In this document: one piece after another, positions 3,180 to 62,865 of the stretch | Position numbering within the stretch: the first letter of the stretch is position 1 | Layout: each line of letters starts with the position of its first letter | Origin: Phallusia mammillata | Lineage: Eukaryota | DNA: 64,000 bases | Assembly (NCBI GenBank): GCA_965637545.1 | Contig: OZ281499.1 | Location: 14,322,001 to 14,386,000, forward strand | Direction: 5' to 3' | Translations under genes and position numbers: made by a program | The notes under the pieces: model-generated | Database searches by the model: none | What the model was told of the DNA's origin: nothing | Seen by the model: the letters and a program-made list of their open reading frames with translations, nothing else

Positions 3180-3644
<465 letters not shown>

Positions 3645-3770: not shown

Positions 3771-4367
3771 CTACTTCTTGGTCGCCTTCTTGGCGGCAGG
3801 CTTTTTGGCCTGCTTCTTGGCTGCCGGTTTCTTCGCCTTCACAGCCGTCTTCTTGGGTGACTTCTTAGCCGCCGCAGCCGGGGCCCTTTTCGCTTGCTTG
3901 GCCGCCTTCTTGGGTGACGACTTCTTGCCCGCCGCCGCCTTCTTGGCAGGCGCTTTTTTGGCGGCCGGCTTCTTTTTCGGGGACTTCTTCGCGTCCTTCT
4001 TGGCTGCGGCCGCCTTGGGCTTGTCCGCCTTCTTGCCGGCTGCTGCCTTGGGCTTCTTCTTCTTCTTGCCCTCGCCGGCCTGCGGCTTCACGAGCTTGAA
4101 GGAGCCGGACGCGCCGGTGCCCTTGGTGCGTGCCAACTGGCCCTTTTCGGCAAGGCGCCGCAGCGCCAGCTTGATATGGCTGTCGGCCGAGTCACCCACC
4201 TTGTAGTTGGCCTTGATGTACTTGGCGATCGCCTGGCGCGACGAGCCGCCCCTCTCCTTCAGCTGCGCGATGGCAGCGCTGATCATCTCCTGGTATGTGG
4301 GGTGCGCCTTGGGCGCGGCCGCCTTCTTGCTGGCCTGCTTCTTTCCTGCGCTCTTCGCGTCGGACAT
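3771..4367 (-). CDS. H1: Linker histone H1 (unit 1)
   Basis: Globular domain HPTYQEMI...GGSSRQAI...[10 protein letters not shown] followed by a K/A/P-rich tail with SPKK motifs; 198 aa. Confidence 0.97.
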
Positions 4368-10797: not shown

Positions 10798-11157
10798 TTA
10801 CTTGGAGCTGGTGTACTTGGTGACGGCCTTGGTGCCTTCGGACACCGCGTGCTTGGCCAATTCGCCGGGCAGGAGCAGACGGACCGAGGTCTGGATCTCG
10901 CGGCTGCTGATGGTCGACCGCTTGTTGTAGAGCGACAGGCGCGACGCCTCGCCGGCGATGCGCTCGAACACGTCGTTGACGAACGAGTTCATGATGCCCA
11001 TCGCCCGGCTCGAGATGCCGGTGTCGGGGTGCACCTGCTTCAACACCTTGTAAATGTAGATGCTGAAGGTCTCGCGTCTGCGCTTTCGCCGCTTCTTGGT
11101 CTTGTCGGCCGGCGCGGCCTTCTTCACTGCCTTCTTGGTGCCTTTGCTAGCTGCCAT
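10798..11157 (-). CDS. H2B: Histone H2B (unit 3)
   Basis: Same protein, offset +9986. Confidence 0.97.
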
Positions 11158-11432
11158 GCTGCTGCTCACTGAATTTCTTTCGAAAGGAAACGAACTGAGC
11201 GGCTCTCCGGCCACCGCGGGCATTTATAGGCGCTCCATGCAAATGAGGCGTCCGTCCTCCCGACGAGCGGCGCTCCCGGGAGCAAAAGGAAACAATGGCC
11301 CCTTGTGGTCGAGTCGTGATCCGAGCGTGATCGGAGTGCGAGAGAATTTCGACAAAGGCGAGAGCTATAAAAGGAGAAGGGCGGCGAGTGGCAGGCATTC
11401 GACCTTGTTTGGTTTGTCATTCGCTCAGCTAA

Positions 11433-11837
<405 letters not shown>

Positions 11838-12418
11838 ATCGTCGCCCCTGTCTCGTACGTGGTGCAAACCGAAAAACGGCTCTTTTCAGAGCCACCCGAA
11901 TTTTTCGCAAAAGAGATTTCAAGATGGCCGCCCCCCCCCCCCGCTGCGGCCCGGGACCGTGCATTGCTCGCCCCGAACGAATGTCTTCCTTGTAGCCTTT
12001 GCCCAATTTTTGCGATGGCAAACTATTTCGACCAATTGAAACCGCATTCCAATTTCACAACACAGCCCTACATGACGTCACTGTGCACCCTGTTGCCTTT
12101 GTCGTCGAGTTCGACCAGGGCTCCGGCTCCGGGCGAAACGAGCCTTTAATGTGCGTCATTCATGCTCCAGCGAGCAACTGTCCTCGCGCAATTGAATTTC
12201 ACCCAACGAAACGAAATGCCATTTCGAAACACGGCAAAAGAGACTAGCCGGCGGCGGCCATGTTCCTGTTTTTGCCGCGCACATCGCAGGCAAGCGTACT
12301 TACTTACGCCGTAAAAAAATGGCACGACGCGCCGGCCCCCGAAACAAGTCAAGTATCTCTTTCGCAAGGGTTTAGGTGGCTCTGAAAAGAGCCGTTTTGG
12401 TTGTTGGTGTGCCGCTTC

Positions 12419-12955
<537 letters not shown>

Positions 12956-28144: not shown

Positions 28145-28567
<423 letters not shown>

Positions 28568-28690
28568 TTACAAGGGTGGGTGGGTACAATAGGTGGGTGT
28601 TTAGCGTATCTTTCTGTATAGATTAAGAAGGGTATAAATTAGAATAGTGTGCGCGCGTAGTGTAACTTGAGGGGAATAAAGGAAAAAAAA

Positions 28691-28744
28691 ATAATAATAA
28701 TAATAAATAAATAAATAAATGAATAAATAAATAAATAAATAAAA
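28691..28744. repeat. (TAA)n/(TAAA)n microsatellite in copy 1 3' UTR
   Basis: ataataataataataaataaataaataaatgaataaataaataaataaataaaa. Confidence 0.9.
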
Positions 28745-28790
28745 GATACGAAGAAAGGTCAGATACATGGAAGTCGTACACACAGCAACG

Positions 28791-29140
28791 AAGTAAACAA
28801 AGACGATAGAAAAATAAAGAAAGGGGGAATTTTAAAGCTAGAAATAGTAGTAGCGGCGTAAAGTAAACAAAGACAATAGAAAACATACGAGGGGAAATTT
28901 AAGGATAGAAATAGTGGCTACGGCGTAAAGTAAACAAAGACAATAGAAAACTTACGAGGGGAATTTTAAAGATAGAACTAGTGGATACAGCGAAAGGTAA
29001 ACAACGACAATAGAAAACATACGATGAGATTTTAAATATAGAGATAGTAAATAGGGCGAAAAGTAAACAAACACAATAGAGATCATACAAGGGGATTTTT
29101 TTACGCAAAGAGGAATGTAAACAAAGGCGGTAGAATTCTA
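28791..29140. repeat. Imperfect ~67-bp tandem repeat (5-6 units) in copy 1 3' UTR
   Basis: Core AAGTAAACAAAGACAATAGAAAACATACGAGGGG recurs at about 28791, 28861, 28928, 28995, 29061 and, degenerate, at 29115. Confidence 0.8.
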
Positions 29141-29568
29141 ACGAAAATACGGGGATATTTTTTTAATTTAACACGAAAGGAAGAAACACAGAGGCAGTAC
29201 ATAACGAGGCTGTTTTACGTGTGCAAACAGGAGAAAAAACACATTCAATCGCAGAGAAGTGCCCAAAGGCGCAAAAATACACAAAGGCGCAAAACAACTA
29301 CACAAAGTGGAGATAGGCGTAGCATAATTTCTTGTTATACAAAGTGTTACACGCAATAGAAGGGATAAGTCTTGTTTTTATCTAAATGGGAGGACAAAAA
29401 GCCGTATGGTATATTTACACGCGGATTTGCAAAAACACGTAAAGAATAGATTTATGCAAAATGAATTTTTGGGATACGCAATATAAATACAATAAATAGT
29501 GCGTGAAACTCGTGTTGAAGCACAGTAAAGGTTCTGGGGCTTGGCGCGACAGCTAATTCTTTATTATT

Positions 29569-32500
29569 TTATATTTTTATCAAATTGATAGCTTTAACGG
29601 CGTTGGCCATGACCTCCAAGTGGATAGAGTTTGGCCTGTTCCGCTGGATAGAAAGTTTAGAGTGTAAAGAGCGGATTAGGGATCGGGCTAGGTCTTTGTC
29701 AAGTGTGGGGCTGATGGAGTGGGTTTCGGCTTTTATTTTGTTACGGGTTTTCCATATCGCATGGGAGAGGGTTGAATTCAGTAGGGATATAAGTGTGTGT
29801 TCGGATGCTGAAGGGTGGTCGGGTTTAATAAATTCATAGTGGGAGGGGGTGTCAAAGTAGGTGGTTGGATTTCCGGTTGTTTTGGTGAAGATTTTTTTTG
29901 CAAGGGTGAGGAGGCTTTGTATTTGGGGGCAGGTGTGGAAAAGGTGGTCGTAGGTTTCGAAATGGGTGTTGCAAAGGTAGCAGTTTGTGTCCTTGTCAAG
30001 AAAGAATATGGTGAATTTACAGTGTAGGGGTAGGGTTTTTTGTTTGAGTCGGTAGTTGAAGGTTTTAATGTAGTTGGGGTGAATTGGGTGGTGGATGAGG
30101 GACCAATCGGTGGGATTCGTGGGGTCGGGGTCAGGGTTGACTAATCTAGTGTAGAGTGGTTTGGATTTTGGGGATAACAGTTCGGATTGTGTTGGGTTCA
30201 GTTTTGCAAGTAGCGACAAGGTGGTCTGGTAAAAGGGGGAAGGTTTGTTTGAGTGGGGAAGGTAGTTTCTGGTGCGGAGGTTAAAAAGTCTGGAGATGGG
30301 GTGTCCAACGTGGTACTCGAGTAGGGAAAGCTGGGGTGTTGTCGGGGTATCAAAAATTCTGTGCAAGAGGTATTTCCGTAGGGGTGCAAGAAAAAAAATG
30401 TCTGTGTATAAGGGAATGTTGGCGACGTCGTAACCACCAAGGTCACGACGTGCGGATAGGGTTTTTATTGGGAGGGGAGGATTTGGGTAGGCTGAAATGA
30501 AGTCTACCACAATGCCATCGACTGTTTCTCGCTGCGTGGGTGGAAGTGGGTAGGTTCGTGCCAGGTATGAGAGTTTGGGGAGAAGCAGGGTTTTGGTTAA
30601 AATGCTCTTGGCGTCGTAGGTGAGGAAAGGGTGTTTGAGGGACGTGGAGGTTTCTTTAAGGGAGCAGATGGCGTTTCTCCATGCTGCGGTGATGGATTTG
30701 GGGTGGCCGATGGGAATGTTGAGAGGGGTGATTACAGTCGGGTTCCAGTTGATATCGGGGAGGTTTGGAGAGTTTGGGGGGCAGAGGGTAGCAATCGCCT
30801 GGGTTTTGGTGGGGTTTAGGGCTAAGCCGGTAATCAGGGTGAAACGGGATATTAATTGAAAGGATGTTTCTAGGGAATGGGAGCCGGCCACCGCAAGGGT
30901 GACGTCGTCCGCAAAGGCGATTGCTTTTGGTGTGTTTCGACAAGGGGCTGGGACAGGTGATATCGGAGGGTGGTTTTGGATGGCAGCGAGTAATGGGTCG
31001 ATGGCAATCAGGAAGAGGGTCAAGCTCAGCGGGTCGCCTTGCCGGACACCTCTCCTGATCGGGAAGCCCGTTGTGGCAAAACCATTGAGGAGGGTGTGTG
31101 AGTAAGCGGTGGTCTGCAGAGAAAGAATGTAATTGACAAAGGTAGGGGGAAAACGTTTTCGGGTAAGTTGTAATTTTAACCAGGTGTAGGAAATGGAGTC
31201 AAAGGCTTTTTGGAAGTCGAGCGAAACAAAAAAGGAATCAGAGGAACGGGATGTGGCTTCATGAAATAGGTCGCGGAGGAGGGTTGTGGCGTCGGAGGTG
31301 GTCGAATTGGGTTGTGCAAATTGGTTTTGGGAAACTATCTGGGAAAGGAAGGGTTTGATGCGGAGGTTTAGGGTTTTTTGTAGTATTTTTAGGTCGGCGT
31401 TCAGGAGGGATATGGGGCGGTAGTTTGTGAGGAGGGATGGGTTGTTCTTCTTGTGGATTAGGGTGAGGTGTCCAAGGTTGAATTCTAAAGGGGTATAGGC
31501 GTTGAGGTACGCGTAGTCCAGGGCTTGGGTGAGGTCAGCCCCGATTAGGTCCCAGTAGAGCGAGTAAAACTCGATACTGAGACCGTCGGGACCCGGGGTT
31601 TTGCCGTTTGGGAAAAGGGATATGGTATTTTTTATTTCGCTTTTCGATAATGGTTGGGATAGGGATTGGGTTTGGTCTTCCGGTATGGGGTTGAGTGGTT
31701 GTTTCAAAAAGATATTGTCCGGGGGTGGGATAGGTTTGTTTTGGTCCGAGTAGAGGTCTGTGAAAAAGCGGTGAGTATGGGAAAGCATTTCCTTGGGTGT
31801 GGTTAGGGGAAGTCCAAGGTCGTTTTCCAGTTCGGTTATCGGGGGGTGTCGTTTGGAGGGGAGGAGTTGTGAGTAAAGGGTTTTGTCTGCCATGTGTTTG
31901 AAATGGGGGTCAGAAGCGAGGGATTTAATTAGATGGGATCGGGCGGTGTCGAGGTGGAGAGTTGCGAGGGATTTTTTTACAGCAAGGAAGGTTTTGTAGT
32001 TTTCAGAGGAAGGGTCGTCGTTGAGGGTTTGCCGAAGGGTGTTAAGTTGGGTCTGGAGGTTGTGGGTATGGGTACGCTGTTCTTGGGCAATTCGTTTTGA
32101 GTGGGTTTGGATAAGTTTTTTGAATTTTACTTTAAGGGTCAACCAGAAGTCCAAGGGATTGGGGTGGAATGGGGCAAGGGTTTTCCATACGGGGTAAAGT
32201 TGTCGGAGGTGTTTTTGGAAGTGAGGATCGTGAAGGGTGTTGACGTTGTTTTTCCAAGTGCCTCTGCCCCTGGGTGGGGCAGAGACTAGGTTCAGGGTAA
32301 GGATTACAAGGTCGTGGTCTGAAAGGGATGTTGGGAGGAAGGTGTGTTGTTTTGGGGTGAGGGCTGGAGATATGTAAATGCGGTCGATTCGGGATTGGGT
32401 GTTAGGTGCTCGACGGGTGAATTGGCGTAGGGTGGGGTGGAGTAACCGAAAAGAGTCCTGCAGGTGAAAGGTTGCTAGAAGGTTCTGTAGTGTTTTATTA

Positions 32501-33009
32501 GGAGGGTGGGTATGGCTGGGGGGATATCTGTCAAGAGAGGGGTTTTCTACACAGTTGAAGTCGCCGGTTAGGATGATAGGGTGGGGTGAATTAATGTAAG
32601 GGTATAGTGAGTCGAAAAAGGTGTTGCGGGCTTGATGACTTTTACTGCCGGAGGGTGCATAAATGTTTACGATATGGATGGTGTGGGTTCGGGTAGATAT
32701 GTCGGTCGTAATAATACGACCGGTGGAGTCAGAAATAGAATTTAGAATGGAAATACTAGAGGAGTTTAGAAGAACTGCGACACCGCCGCTGGCTGAGCCT
32801 TTGTGCGGTGCCGAGTTTAAGAGGATGGGGCCGGAAGTCCATTCGGACTTCCACAGGGATTCGGTTTGGGGGGTAGAGTGGGTTTCTTGGAGGCAAAAAA
32901 GGTCAAAGTTTAAAGAGGACAGATGACGGAACAGGGCGTGGCGTTTGGAGGCCTGGCCTATGCCGTTTACATTCAGCGTACAGATTTTTAGATAACTGGT
33001 CGGCGCCAT
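29569..33009 (-). CDS. ORF2 of copy 1: AP-like endonuclease, reverse transcriptase and C-terminal CCHC zinc finger (1146 aa from ATG)
   Basis: APE motifs TLNVNG, LQETH, NIYAP, GDFN, RIDR, SDH. RT motifs KTPGPDGL, YRPISLLN, DFQKAFD, GVRQGDPLS, FADD. Zinc finger CYLC...HLFHTC. First ATG (MAPTSYLK) at 33009. Confidence 0.96.
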   Translation of the reverse strand: MAPTSYLKICTLNVNGIGQASKRHALFRHLSSLNFDLFCLQETHSTPQTESLWKSEWTSGPILLNSAPHKGSASGGVAVLLNSSSISILNSISDSTGRIITTDISTRTHTIHIVNIYAPSGSKSHQARNTFFDSLYPYINSPHPIILTGDFNCVENPSLDRYPPSHTHPPNKTLQNLLATFHLQDSFRLLHPTLRQFTRRAPNTQSRIDRIYISPALTPKQHTFLPTSLSDHDLVILTLNLVSAPPRGRGTWKNNVNTLHDPHFQKHLRQLYPVWKTLAPFHPNPLDFWLTLKVKFKKLIQTHSKRIAQEQRTHTHNLQTQLNTLRQTLNDDPSSENYKTFLAVKKSLATLHLDTARSHLIKSLASDPHFKHMADKTLYSQLLPSKRHPPITELENDLGLPLTTPKEMLSHTHRFFTDLYSDQNKPIPPPDNIFLKQPLNPIPEDQTQSLSQPLSKSEIKNTISLFPNGKTPGPDGLSIEFYSLYWDLIGADLTQALDYAYLNAYTPLEFNLGHLTLIHKKNNPSLLTNYRPISLLNADLKILQKTLNLRIKPFLSQIVSQNQFAQPNSTTSDATTLLRDLFHEATSRSSDSFFVSLDFQKAFDSISYTWLKLQLTRKRFPPTFVNYILSLQTTAYSHTLLNGFATTGFPIRRGVRQGDPLSLTLFLIAIDPLLAAIQNHPPISPVPAPCRNTPKAIAFADDVTLAVAGSHSLETSFQLISRFTLITGLALNPTKTQAIATLCPPNSPNLPDINWNPTVITPLNIPIGHPKSITAAWRNAICSLKETSTSLKHPFLTYDAKSILTKTLLLPKLSYLARTYPLPPTQRETVDGIVVDFISAYPNPPLPIKTLSARRDLGGYDVANIPLYTDIFFLAPLRKYLLHRIFDTPTTPQLSLLEYHVGHPISRLFNLRTRNYLPHSNKPSPFYQTTLSLLAKLNPTQSELLSPKSKPLYTRLVNPDPDPTNPTDWSLIHHPIHPNYIKTFNYRLKQKTLPLHCKFTIFFLDKDTNCYLCNTHFETYDHLFHTCPQIQSLLTLAKKIFTKTTGNPTTYFDTPSHYEFIKPDHPSASEHTLISLLNSTLSHAIWKTRNKIKAETHSISPTLDKDLARSLIRSLHSKLSIQRNRPNSIHLEVMANAVKAINLIKI

Positions 33010-33056
33010 TTTAACGTTTGAATGAAAAGGGGAACAATAAGGTAACACAGTTTTTT

Positions 33057-34658
33057 TTAAAAAAAGGTGGCGTTAAAATCTGACGGTATGCGAGCTTTGC
33101 ATGAGCAGAGAATTCGTTCATCGCGCGCTAAATTGTAACAATTTCCGCAAGTGCATTGTATTAGTAGTCTTTTACACTTTTTATTGGTACACTGCGATGG
33201 GCTTTTATAGTTCTGTTCTGTGGCGAAAGTGCCACATTTGCACTTAATGTGCATTGTGCCGCACAAACAACGCATGTTTCTACCTTCGTATGCTGTAAGG
33301 CAGCAATTTGTCCGGTTCTTCGGCGGTGTCGCTGCTGGTCGTTTCCTCCTCCGGACGATCTTGTATCCTTCCTCCTGTGGGGTGATGATCTCCTCTGGAA
33401 GCGATGTGTTCGGAAGGGGGACGACCCCTTCCTCATTTTCTTGGGTAATCCTGGGTGTTGAGGTCGTGGGCGCACTTGGCGCAGGCCCAGGAGAACCGGC
33501 TTGCTCAACCATATTTGGGAGCTTCGACCGCGGACTCCTGGGGTTGGTAGTTGGACCACCGACTCGCTCGACCTTTTCAGGGAGCACCTGTCGCGAGGTC
33601 AATGGAGGGGCCGACGTTGTTGTCTCCTCCTCGTCGTTGTTCTTCTTCTGACCACCGACTCGCTCGACCTGATCAGGGAGCACCTGTCGCGAGGTCTGGG
33701 GAGGGGATGTTGTTGCGATCTCCTCCGTATCCTTCTTCTGACCACCGACTCGCTCGACCTGATCAGGGAGCACCTGTCGCGAGGTCTGGGGAGGGGATGT
33801 TGTTGCGATCTCCTCCGTATCCTTCTTCTGACCACCGACTCGCTCGACCTGATCAGGGAGCACCTGTCGCGAGGTCTGGGGAGGGGATGTTGTTGCGATC
33901 TCCTCCGTTTCCGTGGCTAGACCACCGACTCGCTCAACCTGACCAGGGAGCACCTGTCGCGAGGTCTGGGGAGGGGATGTTGTTCCGATCTCCTCCGGTG
34001 CTTCAGCTGGAACATCAGGCTGTTCTTGGGTTTGCTGGGCCTGACGCTCCAGCAGCGACGGGCATTCCTCCTTCTTATGGCCTACGATCTGACAATAGGC
34101 ACAAGCCCGTGGTTGGCCAGTGTAGAACATTAACACTGACCACTTTCCTAGAAAGATGCTTTCTGGGATGGGGCTTTCCGCGAGAACGGATCTCTTCATA
34201 AAGAAAGCCCGTTTCCCCAGAGACTTGCTCATCGGGTCTTTAACTCTGTAAGAACGCTCGACTGGAGCGTACGTTCTGTCCAGATAATCCACGATTTCTC
34301 GCATATCAATCCCTGGGGGACAGCGAGACATGACAACCTTCACTAGATTGTCAGCGTAGGCTGTGGCGTAATCCGCCCTTTGGCTGTTGGTCAGGGCGAC
34401 CGCTAGATCTTTGGCCTTCGTCTCCGTGCTACAATAAAAAGTAACTCGGCCCTTCGGCAGTTGAATGATGCCGTCCAAGTCGGCTCGAAAATTGAACCTG
34501 ATAGCCCGTAAAACTTCGTAAATCTCCTGTCTTTTCAGGCCAGGGTTAAAGCGGGCTTCCACCTCGACATTTCGGTCGAAAGCGAAAGGCTCTTGACCTT
34601 CATTTGCAGTGGTGGCTGTGGGAGCCAAACTCTTCTTTGTGGCGGCAGCGTAGGACAT
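33057..34658 (-). CDS. ORF1 of copy 1: gag-like nucleic-acid-binding protein (533 aa from ATG)
   Basis: Zinc knuckle CAYCQIVGHKKEEC (CX2CX4HX4C, 34062-34103), 30-aa repeats, basic RRRKRP, Cys-rich C-terminus; 47 bp upstream of ORF2. ATG (MSYAAA) at 34658. Confidence 0.9.
   Translation of the reverse strand: MSYAAATKKSLAPTATTANEGQEPFAFDRNVEVEARFNPGLKRQEIYEVLRAIRFNFRADLDGIIQLPKGRVTFYCSTETKAKDLAVALTNSQRADYATAYADNLVKVVMSRCPPGIDMREIVDYLDRTYAPVERSYRVKDPMSKSLGKRAFFMKRSVLAESPIPESIFLGKWSVLMFYTGQPRACAYCQIVGHKKEECPSLLERQAQQTQEQPDVPAEAPEEIGTTSPPQTSRQVLPGQVERVGGLATETEEIATTSPPQTSRQVLPDQVERVGGQKKDTEEIATTSPPQTSRQVLPDQVERVGGQKKDTEEIATTSPPQTSRQVLPDQVERVGGQKKNNDEEETTTSAPPLTSRQVLPEKVERVGGPTTNPRSPRSKLPNMVEQAGSPGPAPSAPTTSTPRITQENEEGVVPLPNTSLPEEIITPQEEGYKIVRRRKRPAATPPKNRTNCCLTAYEGRNMRCLCGTMHIKCKCGTFATEQNYKSPSQCTNKKCKRLLIQCTCGNCYNLARDERILCSCKARIPSDFNATFF
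33552..33995 (-). repeat. 90-bp (30-aa) coding tandem repeat in ORF1 copy 1, 4 units plus 1 degenerate
   Basis: EEIATTSPPQTSRQVLPDQVERVGGQKKDT; exact 90-bp period at 33661/33751/33841. Confidence 0.95.
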
Positions 34659-34916
34659 ACTGGGCTGCTGTAAAAGCCACAACAAGAACTAGCCTCAAAC
34701 AAAGAAAAGGCTGCACCAACCGGTGTCAAGTTGCACGAACCCGTGTGAAAGCGGGAAACAGCAACAAGCGGCTTCTCTAAACAAAGAAAACCTTCCTCGA
34801 ACCGCTTGCAAGCGGACAAGAACAATGAAATTTCTGGGAAAACTTGTAAACAAGTTACCCACATGAAAATAACAAAAGCTGCCTCAAATCCAAAACTGAA
34901 AACAAGGCTGCAGGGT

Positions 34917-34932
34917 AGTCCTGAAAAGGACT
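34917..34932 (-). other. Histone 3' stem-loop-like hairpin in copy 1 5' UTR
   Basis: Element strand AAAG-AGTCCT-TTTC-AGGACT-ACCC versus host AAAC-GGCTCT-TTTC-AGAGCC-ACCC. Confidence 0.6.
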
Positions 34933-35124
34933 CTTTATGTGTGTTCAATTCACCCAGAAAAAAGTGAAGAGAACGGACTATCTAAACAAAAATGTTACAA
35001 GAACAAACTCGTCTGGTTAGTAAAAGAATCGAAATCTATCAATAGCCTTTACTGTATCCTGATGATCTGTTCGACGATAACGTTGTTGTTTCCCTTGTGG
35101 TGCGTCTCCAGGCCCGCCTCCGGC

Positions 35125-35131
35125 TTATAAA
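35125..35131 (-). promoter_or_regulatory. H4 TATA box now directly upstream of retrotransposon copy 1
   Basis: TTTATAA on - strand, equivalent to 3547-3553 of unit 1. Confidence 0.75.
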
Positions 35132-35348
35132 GTATGAAAACGAACGTAAGCGAAGCGAATATGCACAATATGTCCGCATTCGGCGCAGCGGAGCCATGGC
35201 TCGGCAACGAATGGTAGGAATTTCAGTTTCGAAAGGCTAAGTGCGACTGGCGCGCGCAAAACACGAGTTGTTTTTCCCTTTGCGAAAGTGTGGGTGGCCC
35301 TGAAAAGAGCCGTTTTTGTTGCGCGCGGAAAATCTACCGCGCTCCGCT

Positions 35349-35945
35349 CTACTTCTTGGTCGCCTTCTTGGCGGCAGGCTTTTTGGCCTGCTTCTTGGCT
35401 GCCGGTTTCTTCGCCTTCACAGCCGTCTTCTTGGGTGACTTCTTAGCCGCCGCAGCCGGGGCCCTTTTCGCTTGCTTGGCCGCCTTCTTGGGTGACGACT
35501 TCTTGCCCGCCGCCGCCTTCTTGGCAGGCGCTTTTTTGGCGGCCGGCTTCTTTTTCGGGGACTTCTTCGCGTCCTTCTTGGCTGCGGCCGCCTTGGGCTT
35601 GTCCGCCTTCTTGCCGGCTGCTGCCTTGGGCTTCTTCTTCTTCTTGCCCTCGCCGGCCTGCGGCTTCACGAGCTTGAAGGAGCCGGACGCGCCGGTGCCC
35701 TTGGTGCGTGCCAACTGGCCCTTTTCGGCAAGGCGCCGCAGCGCCAGCTTGATATGGCTGTCGGCCGAGTCACCCACCTTGTAGTTGGCCTTGATGTACT
35801 TGGCGATCGCCTGGCGCGACGAGCCGCCCCTCTCCTTCAGCTGCGCGATGGCAGCGCTGATCATCTCCTGGTATGTGGGGTGCGCCTTGGGCGCGGCCGC
35901 CTTCTTGCTGGCCTGCTTCTTTCCTGCGCTCTTCGCGTCGGACAT
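35349..35945 (-). CDS. H1: Histone H1 (unit 6)
   Basis: Same protein, offset +31578. Confidence 0.97.
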
Positions 35946-60533: not shown

Positions 60534-62042
60534 TTAAAAAAAGGTGGCGTTAAAATCTGACGGTATGCGAGCTTTGCATGAGCAGAGAATTCGTTCATCG
60601 CGCGCTAAATTGTAACAATTTCCGCAAGTGCATTGTATTAGTAGTCTTTTACACTTTTTATTAGTACACTGCGATGGGCTTTTATAGTTCTGTTCTGTGG
60701 CGTAAGTGCCACATTTGCACTTAATGTGCATTGTGCCGCACAAACAACGCATGTTTCTACCTTCGTATGCTGTAAGGCAGCAATTTGTCCGGTTCTTCGG
60801 CGGTGTCGCTGCTGGTCGTTTCCTCCTCCGGACGATCTTGTATCCTTCCTCCTGTGGGGTGATGATCTCCTCTGGAAGCGATGTGTCCGGAAGGGGGACG
60901 ACCCCTTCCTCATTTTCTTGGGTAATCCTGGGTGTTGAGGTCGTGGGCGCACTTGGCGCAGGCCCAGGAGAACCGGCTTGCTCAACCATATTTGGGAGCT
61001 TCGACCGCGGACTCCTGGGGTTGGTAGTTGGACCACCGACTCGCTCGACCTTTTCAGGGAGCACCTGTCGCGAGGTCAATGGAGGGGCCGACGTTGTTGT
61101 CTCCTCCTCGTTGTTCTTCTTCTGACCACCGACTCGCTCGACCTGATCAGGGAGCACCTGTCGCGAGGTCTGGGGAGGGGATGTTGTTGCGATCTCCTCC
61201 GTATCCTTCTTCTGACCACCGACTCGCTCGACCTGATCAGGGAGCACCTGTCGCGAGGTCTGGGGAGGGGATGTTGTTGCGATCTCCTCCGTATCCTTCT
61301 TCTGACCACCGACTCGCTCAACCTGACCAGGGAGCACCTGTCGCGAGGTCTGGGGAGGGGATGTTGTTCCGATCTCCTCCGGTGCTTCAGCTGGAACATC
61401 AGGCTGTTCTTGGGTTTGCTGGGCCTGACGCTCCAGCAGCGACGGGCATTCCTCCTTCTTATGGCCTACGATCTGACAATAGGCACAAGCCCGTGGTTGG
61501 CCAGTGTAGAACATTAACACTGACCACTTTCCTAGAAAGATGCTTTCTGGGATGGGGCTTTCCGCGAGAACGGATCTCTTCATAAAGAAAGCCCGTTTCC
61601 CCAGAGACTTGCTCATCGGGTCTTTAACTCTGTAAGAACGCTCGACTGGAGCGTACGTTCTGTCCAGATAATCCACGATTTCTCGCATATCAATCCCTGG
61701 GGGACAGCGAGACATGACAACCTTCACTAGATTGTCAGCGTAGGCTGTGGCGTAATCCGCCCTTTGGCTGTTGGTCAGGGCGACCGCTAGATCTTTGGCC
61801 TTCGCCTCCGTGCTACAATAAAAAGTAACTCGGCCCTTCGGCAGTTGAATGATGCCGTCCAAGTCGGCTCGAAAATTGAACCTGATAGCCCGTAAAACTT
61901 CGTAAATCTCCTGTCTTTTCAGGCCAGGGTTAAAGCGGGCTTCCACCTCGACATTTCGGTCGAAAGCGAAAGGCTCTTGACCTTCATTTGCAGTGGTGGC
62001 TGTGGGAGCCAAACTCTTCTTTGTGGCGGCAGCGTAGGACAT
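60534..62042 (-). CDS. ORF1 of copy 2 (502 aa from ATG)
   Basis: Same architecture as copy 1; 31 aa shorter (one 30-aa repeat plus one residue). Confidence 0.9.
   Translation of the reverse strand: MSYAAATKKSLAPTATTANEGQEPFAFDRNVEVEARFNPGLKRQEIYEVLRAIRFNFRADLDGIIQLPKGRVTFYCSTEAKAKDLAVALTNSQRADYATAYADNLVKVVMSRCPPGIDMREIVDYLDRTYAPVERSYRVKDPMSKSLGKRAFFMKRSVLAESPIPESIFLGKWSVLMFYTGQPRACAYCQIVGHKKEECPSLLERQAQQTQEQPDVPAEAPEEIGTTSPPQTSRQVLPGQVERVGGQKKDTEEIATTSPPQTSRQVLPDQVERVGGQKKDTEEIATTSPPQTSRQVLPDQVERVGGQKKNNEEETTTSAPPLTSRQVLPEKVERVGGPTTNPRSPRSKLPNMVEQAGSPGPAPSAPTTSTPRITQENEEGVVPLPDTSLPEEIITPQEEGYKIVRRRKRPAATPPKNRTNCCLTAYEGRNMRCLCGTMHIKCKCGTYATEQNYKSPSQCTNKKCKRLLIQCTCGNCYNLARDERILCSCKARIPSDFNATFF
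61029..61379 (-). repeat. 90-bp coding tandem repeat in ORF1 copy 2, 3 units plus 1 degenerate
   Basis: Same repeat as copy 1, one unit fewer. Confidence 0.95.
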
Positions 62043-62283
62043 ACTGGGCTGCTGTAAAAGCCACAACAAGAACTAGCCTCAAACAAAGAAAAGGCTGCAC
62101 CAACCGGTGTCAAGTTGCACGAACCCGTGTGAAAGCGGGAAACAGCAACAAGCGGCTTCTCTAAACAAAGAAAACCTTCCTCGAACCGCTTGCAAGCGGA
62201 CAAGAACAATGAAATTTCTGGGAAAACTTGTAAACAAGTTACCCACATGAAAATAACAAAAGCTGCCTCAAATCCAAAACTGA

Positions 62284-62865
<582 letters not shown>

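Follow-up and report, generated by a model that had tools for sequence, protein, structure and literature searches.

Two copies of an L1-type LINE inserted in a histone gene array carry at their 5' end a worn piece of the H4 gene that one of them interrupts, comprising an H4-like leader and a 21-nt stretch (here called the fossil) that appears to be the remains of the H4 start region with its ATG deleted. The history proposed here is that an ancestor of the element captured the start of H4, was transcribed from the H4 promoter and carried the captured head from jump to jump in its RNA, leaving a fossil without an AUG. We give this history as a whole a probability of about 0.75; it is drawn from two copies, and its counterpoint is a single old master locus with one daughter.

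The histone array and its two LINE copies

The window, by which we mean the whole 64-kb stretch of DNA analysed, is an array of tandem histone units of 4993 bp, each with one gene for H2B, H2A, H3, H4 and H1 (Table 1). The identity between units is 99.98%, which bears out the initial annotation in its view that the host array has been homogenised. Nine intact H4 genes lie in the window, all of which read ATCATGTCAGGACGCGGCAAAGG after the leader. The two LINE copies are 6.6 kb long and both lie on the minus strand. Each consists of a 443-nt 5' UTR, an ORF1 of 533 aa (counted from the first ATG), an ORF2, a 1.1-kb 3' UTR and a poly(A), with pure A runs of 37 in copy 1 and 24 in copy 2 (counts that include 3 and 2 host A, respectively).

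The product of ORF2 shows Pfam matches to an apurinic-like endonuclease (Exo_endo_phos, residues 23-245, 1.8e-18) placed N-terminal to a reverse transcriptase (RVT_1, residues 531-752, 2.4e-31), which is followed by a C-terminal zinc motif (zf-RVT, residues 978-1043, 2.2e-07, above the curated cut-off). Its best solved relative is human L1 ORF2p (1e-61 over residues 3-868). Together with a poly(A) at an A-rich nick site, the endonuclease, reverse transcriptase and zinc motif are the features of an APE-type LINE of the L1 superfamily (L1/Tx1). In a look-up for further copies in the same genome, the ORF2 of the window was not on record. A search with ORF1 returned a single weak match, a protein of Clavelina lepadiformis. 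ORF1 also contains tandem repeats of about 30 aa with a TSPPQTSRQVLP-type motif (33554-33997 and 33846-33935), and copy 2 is without one 90-nt repeat unit.

The 3' junction of copy 1 passes from the poly(A) into H4 at the AAAGG of codons 6-7 (GGC/AAAGG, codon 5/6), and on the 5' side the array picks up again at the last base of the H4 leader. In copy 2, the poly(A) is joined to H1 after codon 4 (GACGCG/AAGAG), 12 nt past the H1 ATG, and the 5' end, oriented opposite to H2A, adjoins the two bases preceding the ATG of that gene; 2109 bp of the array have been lost. The window contains a single insertion at codon 5/6 of H4, and a single 3' junction at a similar-looking site in H1 (codon 4/5). The latter (55904-55930; unit 4353-4367) resembles the H4 site GACGCGGC/AAAGG, which lies 15 nt past the H4 ATG, and the H1 nick of copy 2 looks, from its letters, like off-target use of an H4-like site. 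At the 5' join of copy 2 (62484-62495), H2A has the same SGRGKGG-coding target as H4, and the break at this far end may likewise not be random. A separate observation concerns 28145-28537 on the minus strand, where the end of the 3' UTR and the poly(A) stand in frame with the remaining H4 as a lysine run; this frame is without any opening ATG.

Table 1. Positions of the histone genes, the two LINE copies, the parts of their 5' ends and the heads of related elements. Numbers refer to the window except where the 4993-bp histone unit or a relative locus is named.
Feature	Position	Strand	Remark
H2B	unit 812-1171	minus	
H2A	unit 1474-1851	plus	
H3	unit 2433-2843	minus	
H4	unit 3180-3491	minus	
H1	unit 3771-4367	minus	
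Intact host H4 counterpart of the fossil	unit 3472-3494	minus	Reference copy, read 3494 to 3472; nine identical copies in the window
Host H4 TATA box TATAAG upstream of copy 1, its first T 28 nt ahead of the element-borne leader	35124-35129	minus	
LINE copy 1, whole	28442-35101	minus	Interrupts H4
LINE copy 1, body	28442-35045	minus	5' UTR, ORF1, ORF2, 3' UTR, poly(A)
H4-leader-like 29 nt, copy 1	35073-35101	minus	Continuous with host H4 promoter; one private change at 35094
6-nt insert, copy 1	35067-35072	minus	GAACAG, between leader and fossil
H4 start fossil, copy 1	35046-35066	minus	21 nt, ATG lost; reads ATCATCAGGATACAGTAAAGG from 35066 to 35046
Sole remaining upstream ATG of the 443-nt 5' UTR	34862-34864	minus	Weak context, T at -3 and +4
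ORF1, copy 1	ATG 34658, stop codon ending at 33057	minus	
ORF2, copy 1	33009-29569	minus	
Host H4 AAAGG directly 3' of copy 1 poly(A)	28437-28441	minus	Same 5 nt end the fossil; candidate 5-bp target-site duplication
LINE copy 2, whole	55906-62485	minus	Flanks are H1 and H2A
LINE copy 2, body	55906-62429	minus	3' junction within H1 codon 4/5; 2109 bp of array missing
H4-leader-like 29 nt, copy 2	62457-62485	minus	5' end of copy; 2 changes from host leader
6-nt insert, copy 2	62451-62456	minus	GAACAC, last base differs from copy 1
H4 start fossil, copy 2	62430-62450	minus	Identical to copy 1; reads ATCATCAGGATACAGTAAAGG from 62450 to 62430
Spliced-leader heads of relatives	L003:5604-5670, L004:6431-6500, L005:111-175, L007:2527-2590, L008:7480-7545		

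The fossil and its descent from H4

On the element strand of both copies, the H4-leader-like 29 nt are followed by the 6-nt insert, then by ATCATCAGGATACAGTAAAGG and the rest of the 5' UTR. Compared with the 23 nt of H4 that run from the end of the leader to the insertion point, the fossil shows 17 identities out of 21, four transitions (C>T, G>A, G>A, C>T) and one 2-nt gap (TG or GT) that takes out the H4 ATG. These positions, letters and alignment, together with the insert after the leader, had been described in the initial annotation and were found as reported in both copies. The homology takes in the whole of the 23-nt H4 probe, with AAAGG as its last bases. Three of the four transitions fall at two CpGs of H4; CpG decay as their source found no clear support in the CpG content of the element (observed/expected 0.93, and 0.67 in the 5' UTR).

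The significance of the match, for which the same annotation had proposed a shuffling control, was assessed as the best local alignment score of the H4 23-mer within the 40 nt that follow the leader. The match scores 10, a value attained in 0.27% of cases when the target is dinucleotide-shuffled, in 0.84% when the probe is shuffled, and in none of 2614 real 40-nt windows taken from the element body. The H4-start 23-mer also ties for the top score among all 9986 23-mers on both strands of the histone unit; 13 of them attain it, the other 12 being overlapping frames of one site. Taken alone, the 21-nt match has a P of about 0.001-0.008, which is significant but not overwhelming. As to the choice between histone starts, the H2A start agrees with the fossil at 15 of 21 positions (by eye) and H4 at 17, and since the leader is that of H4, H2A was rejected as the source, if weakly.

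The match is short and one other site in the histone unit scores as well, as would be expected if the element carried the H4 leader only and the next 21 nt were unrelated sequence of its own. Such a chance resemblance is very unlikely, because the P value was obtained with a probe fixed beforehand by biology, and because the match runs end to end, is collinear with the leader and stops at the insertion site. In addition, every mismatch is a transition, for which a random match has a chance of about (1/3)^4, and the same letters are present in copy 2 outside H4. On these grounds we take the 21 nt to be a true remnant of H4 from the leader end to the insertion point. The AAAGG at the end of the fossil is also the first host sequence after the poly(A) of copy 1, so the homologous stretch coincides exactly with the part of H4 that would be present in a read-through transcript if the element were inserted in H4, and AAAGG has the appearance of a target-site duplication left by the founding insertion.

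Young copies with an old head

Over 6.55 kb, 20 substitutions separate the two copies (0.3%), with none between 35066 and 34422, and ORF1 and ORF2 are open in both. This similarity, the intact reading frames and the pure poly(A) runs mark both copies as recent insertions. The fossil, by comparison, is 19% diverged from H4 and has two indels, with every change common to both copies, and it is identical in copy 2 even though neither flank of that copy is H4. The combination of young copies and a shared, 19%-diverged fossil indicates that the wear predates both insertions and travelled in the RNA template.

Alternatively, the fossil could have decayed in place at one old master locus, where H4 bases beside a long-resident insertion escaped homogenisation and copy 2 is its single daughter, with no carriage of the head through repeated jumps. 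Only two copies are seen, copy 1 does lie in H4 between host-identical flanks, and conversion tracts would presumably be unable to cross the insertion without deleting it. However, a locus old enough for 19% decay and two indels in the fossil should also have a worn tail, and copy 1 has a pure run of 37 A, intact ORFs and a body 99.7% identical to that of copy 2. Since every change of the fossil is, moreover, already common to both copies, decay at a master locus is unlikely, and inheritance of the worn head through RNA is preferred. The initial annotation had held that the lineage captured its own target site long ago. The 5' end of the element does consist of a diverged stretch of H4, from the leader through the start region to the insertion point, also in the copy outside H4, which upholds the capture; "long ago" is a date that two copies cannot give.

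Differences at the 5' end and a possible hairpin

Inherited carriage of the head accounts less well for the distribution of the differences between the copies. Four of them fall in the first 35 nt, that is, in the leader-like part and the insert (35067-35101 against 62451-62485), followed by none in the next 645 nt and 16 in the remaining ~5,900 aligned nt, where divergence is also higher in the final ~130 nt ahead of the poly(A). The excess in the leader part is unpredicted by a simple model of our preferred explanation. If the host leader had replaced that of the element in patches, three of the four differing sites would be accounted for, but not the one in the insert, and the 6-nt insert itself is without explanation in the proposed history.

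The H4 likeness might instead have been kept by selection, either as homology for 5' joining at H4 and H2A targets or as one arm of a 5' hairpin. The first 202 nt fold with z=-3.4, and leader, insert and fossil pair with 35026-34984 as a long imperfect hairpin (34984-35091, minus strand; pair list from a 127-nt fold). Of three positions in the stem at which the copies differ, two retain pairing (A-U/G-U), and the inverted similarity of the arms at the DNA level has P=0.005. The duplex energy of the arms is nevertheless ordinary (P about 0.08-0.11 against shuffles), being equalled by 20 of 322 real windows, and the fossil, with its non-synonymous changes and its indels, would guide homology less well than the leader. 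Maintenance by selection is therefore quite unlikely, and we continue with a captured head that has been free to wear.

Promoter use and proposed history

The leader of copy 2 begins with an A which, in the intact unit, lies 28 nt downstream of the first T of the H4 TATAAG. Such spacing from the TATA box is typical of Pol II start sites. The 5' end of copy 2, which sits outside H4, would thus coincide with the +1 position of the transcript of the target gene, and the LINE is probably transcribed from the H4 promoter. When 34400-35400 was scanned against Rfam (E<=1), no self-cleaving ribozyme was returned, only the genuine histone stem-loop of H1 and two weak chance matches; with no ribozyme family in the 5' UTR, there is nothing to trim the H4 head off. 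At the other side of the cycle, work on R2 cited in PMC4494074 suggests that co-transcribed target sequence can help integration and 5' joining. Copy 1 has one leader only, and the 18 nt of the host from ATC ATG to GGC are absent, with the worn version in their place. This arrangement is what would be expected if the 5' junction was formed by new cDNA pairing with the host leader.

The following sequence of events would account for these features. An ancestral L1-type LINE inserted in H4 between codons 5 and 6 (GGC/AAAGG), in the orientation of the gene, where the H4 promoter would drive it and yield an RNA that begins at the H4 cap site and has the leader and the initial 20 coding bases of H4 ahead of the element sequence. 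This read-through RNA would serve as the template for later jumps, by which the H4 piece would become the element's own 5' end, free to mutate while the host genes stay homogenised. Copying into another H4 gene would then place the new 5' junction in the well-matched leader, so that the worn version replaces the 18 nt of the host with their ATG, as in copy 1, and landing elsewhere would bring the entire head along, as in copy 2.

Loss of the start codon

The lost H4 AUG had a strong context (A at -3) and lay ~35 nt from the cap. After its loss, the first AUG is found 237 nt downstream (34864), and the AUG of ORF1 (34658) has an A at -3. If the H4 AUG were restored, its frame would run 8 codons into the element and stop at TGA, so that the cost of keeping it would be a short uORF and no histone fusion. 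This bears on the earlier suggestion that loss of the AUG stopped ribosomes from initiating in the histone frame and pointed to long residence in H4: the ATG is indeed gone, but the frame would be only 8 codons long and the weak upstream AUG at 34864 is still there, and selection for the loss enters only as a conjecture.

By base composition, AUG is the most under-represented triplet of the element's 5' UTR (1 seen, 7.5 expected), a deficit that is not significant against dinucleotide shuffles of this 5' UTR (1 seen, 3.2 expected, P=0.12). When the LINE of the window was pooled with five relatives, from the +1 of the head to the AUG of ORF1, 7 AUGs were seen and 20.5 expected (P=0.0003), a figure to be read with the six elements being relatives and so not fully independent, and with 5 of the 7 AUGs lying in one decayed copy. 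AUG-poor leaders are a feature of this LINE group, which makes selection against the captured H4 AUG plausible. Its loss may thus have been adaptive and improved translation of ORF1; neutral decay would equally give a 2-nt deletion beside four substitutions and a 6-nt insertion.

Related elements with spliced-leader heads

The closest ORF2 relatives in the protein collection, from ENA assemblies, are 35-38% identical to that of the window. Eight of their loci were examined, of which five have the 5' end (L003, L004, L005, L007 and L008). None of the eight contains a histone gene or an H4 or H2A start motif. In the five loci with 5' ends, mutual homology has its start precisely at base 1 of the tunicate spliced leader (SL) ATTCTATTTGAATAAG, the +1 of the SL RNA gene, and takes in GTAAGT and part of the intron of that gene, with unrelated sequence upstream. 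The presence of the intron part indicates that these heads are derived from the SL RNA gene and not from trans-splicing. Wear is seen in two of them. Both L003 and L004 show A>T at base 1; in L003 the donor is changed as well (GT>AT), and in L004 the leader contains 5 inserted nt and ends with a G>A change. L008, from the same assembly as both, has kept the canonical leader. The flanks of L003 and L008 are too complex to define target sites, and the L003 LINE lies at the centre of a 1.8-kb inverted repeat, 96-99% identical (L003:3355-5130 and 11087-12886).

The initial annotation would have seen its reading contradicted by sister families without an H4-like terminus. In the letter this is the case at all eight loci, but not in spirit, as the relatives carry decaying heads of the SL RNA gene which likewise begin at +1. 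These heads support the view that a target-derived head is a trait of this LINE group. A quick ORF2 tree places the LINE of the window inside a well-supported clade, between two clades with SL heads (clade support 100, inner forks 81-97; midpoint root, unnamed relatives only, a careful search being unfinished), which, read with the heads, suggests a switch of target from the SL RNA gene to histone genes.

It is tempting to see in both kinds of head a general rule for this group of tunicate LINEs, by which the 5' transcribed part of a new multicopy Pol II target would become the leader, the promoter would be regained at each return and the diverting signal (the start codon in H4, the trans-splice donor in SL) would then be lost. 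Such capture and disarming is a possible rule, though a doubtful one; if true, the AUG-less H4 fossil would be the first case of a disarmed head from a protein-coding target. The fossil has a use of its own as a record of the founding insertion site and a mark of what the element's RNA contained, and hence as a marker for the history of the family and, given more copies or species, possibly as a clock. It also offers a testable case of a retrotransposon adapting a captured mRNA 5' end.

Comparison with known systems

Promoter-borrowing, site-specific LINEs are known from rRNA, snRNA and spliced-leader genes, and R2 and similar elements are known to use the target promoter and to carry target sequence in the RNA (PMC4494074). 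Full-text searches of the literature turned up no LINE described as targeting histone genes, which is not proof of absence. What is new here is the protein-coding target and the captured start region with its AUG gone. A protein-coding target poses an extra problem, as the borrowed leader ends in a strong start codon.

The closest parallel in transcription is given by SLACS, CZAR and CRE of trypanosomatids, in which the element lies a few bases into a multicopy Pol II gene and the head of its RNA is host-gene sequence. In SLACS, transcription is reported to start at +1 of the interrupted SL RNA gene and to run into the element (PMC3447711). However, these elements have a restriction-like endonuclease and a non-coding target, whereas the LINE of the window is an APE-type relative of L1 with a protein-coding histone target, and its captured head, unlike theirs, held a start codon that is now gone. 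Similarly, R2 (and R1) insert site-specifically in the 28S rDNA and, lacking a promoter of their own, depend on co-transcription with their target. R2 trims the 28S part with an HDV-like ribozyme, whereas the LINE of the window is without a ribozyme family and has kept its head in the copy outside the target.

In architecture, the LINE resembles the Tx1 clade (Keno in U2 snRNA genes, Mutsu in 5S rDNA, Kibi and Koshi), which combines APE, reverse transcriptase and a C-terminal zinc motif with a preference for multicopy genes (PMC4494074, PMC4640811). A histone target is absent from the lists in these two papers. Finally, 5' transduction by L1 and SVA (e.g. the MAST2-SVA subfamily) also carries upstream sequence transcribed from a host promoter to new loci, where it becomes part of a subfamily (PMC4494074). 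Those transductions are accidents at dispersed sites, whereas the piece captured by the LINE of the window would be its own preferred target, so that each return would restore the same promoter.
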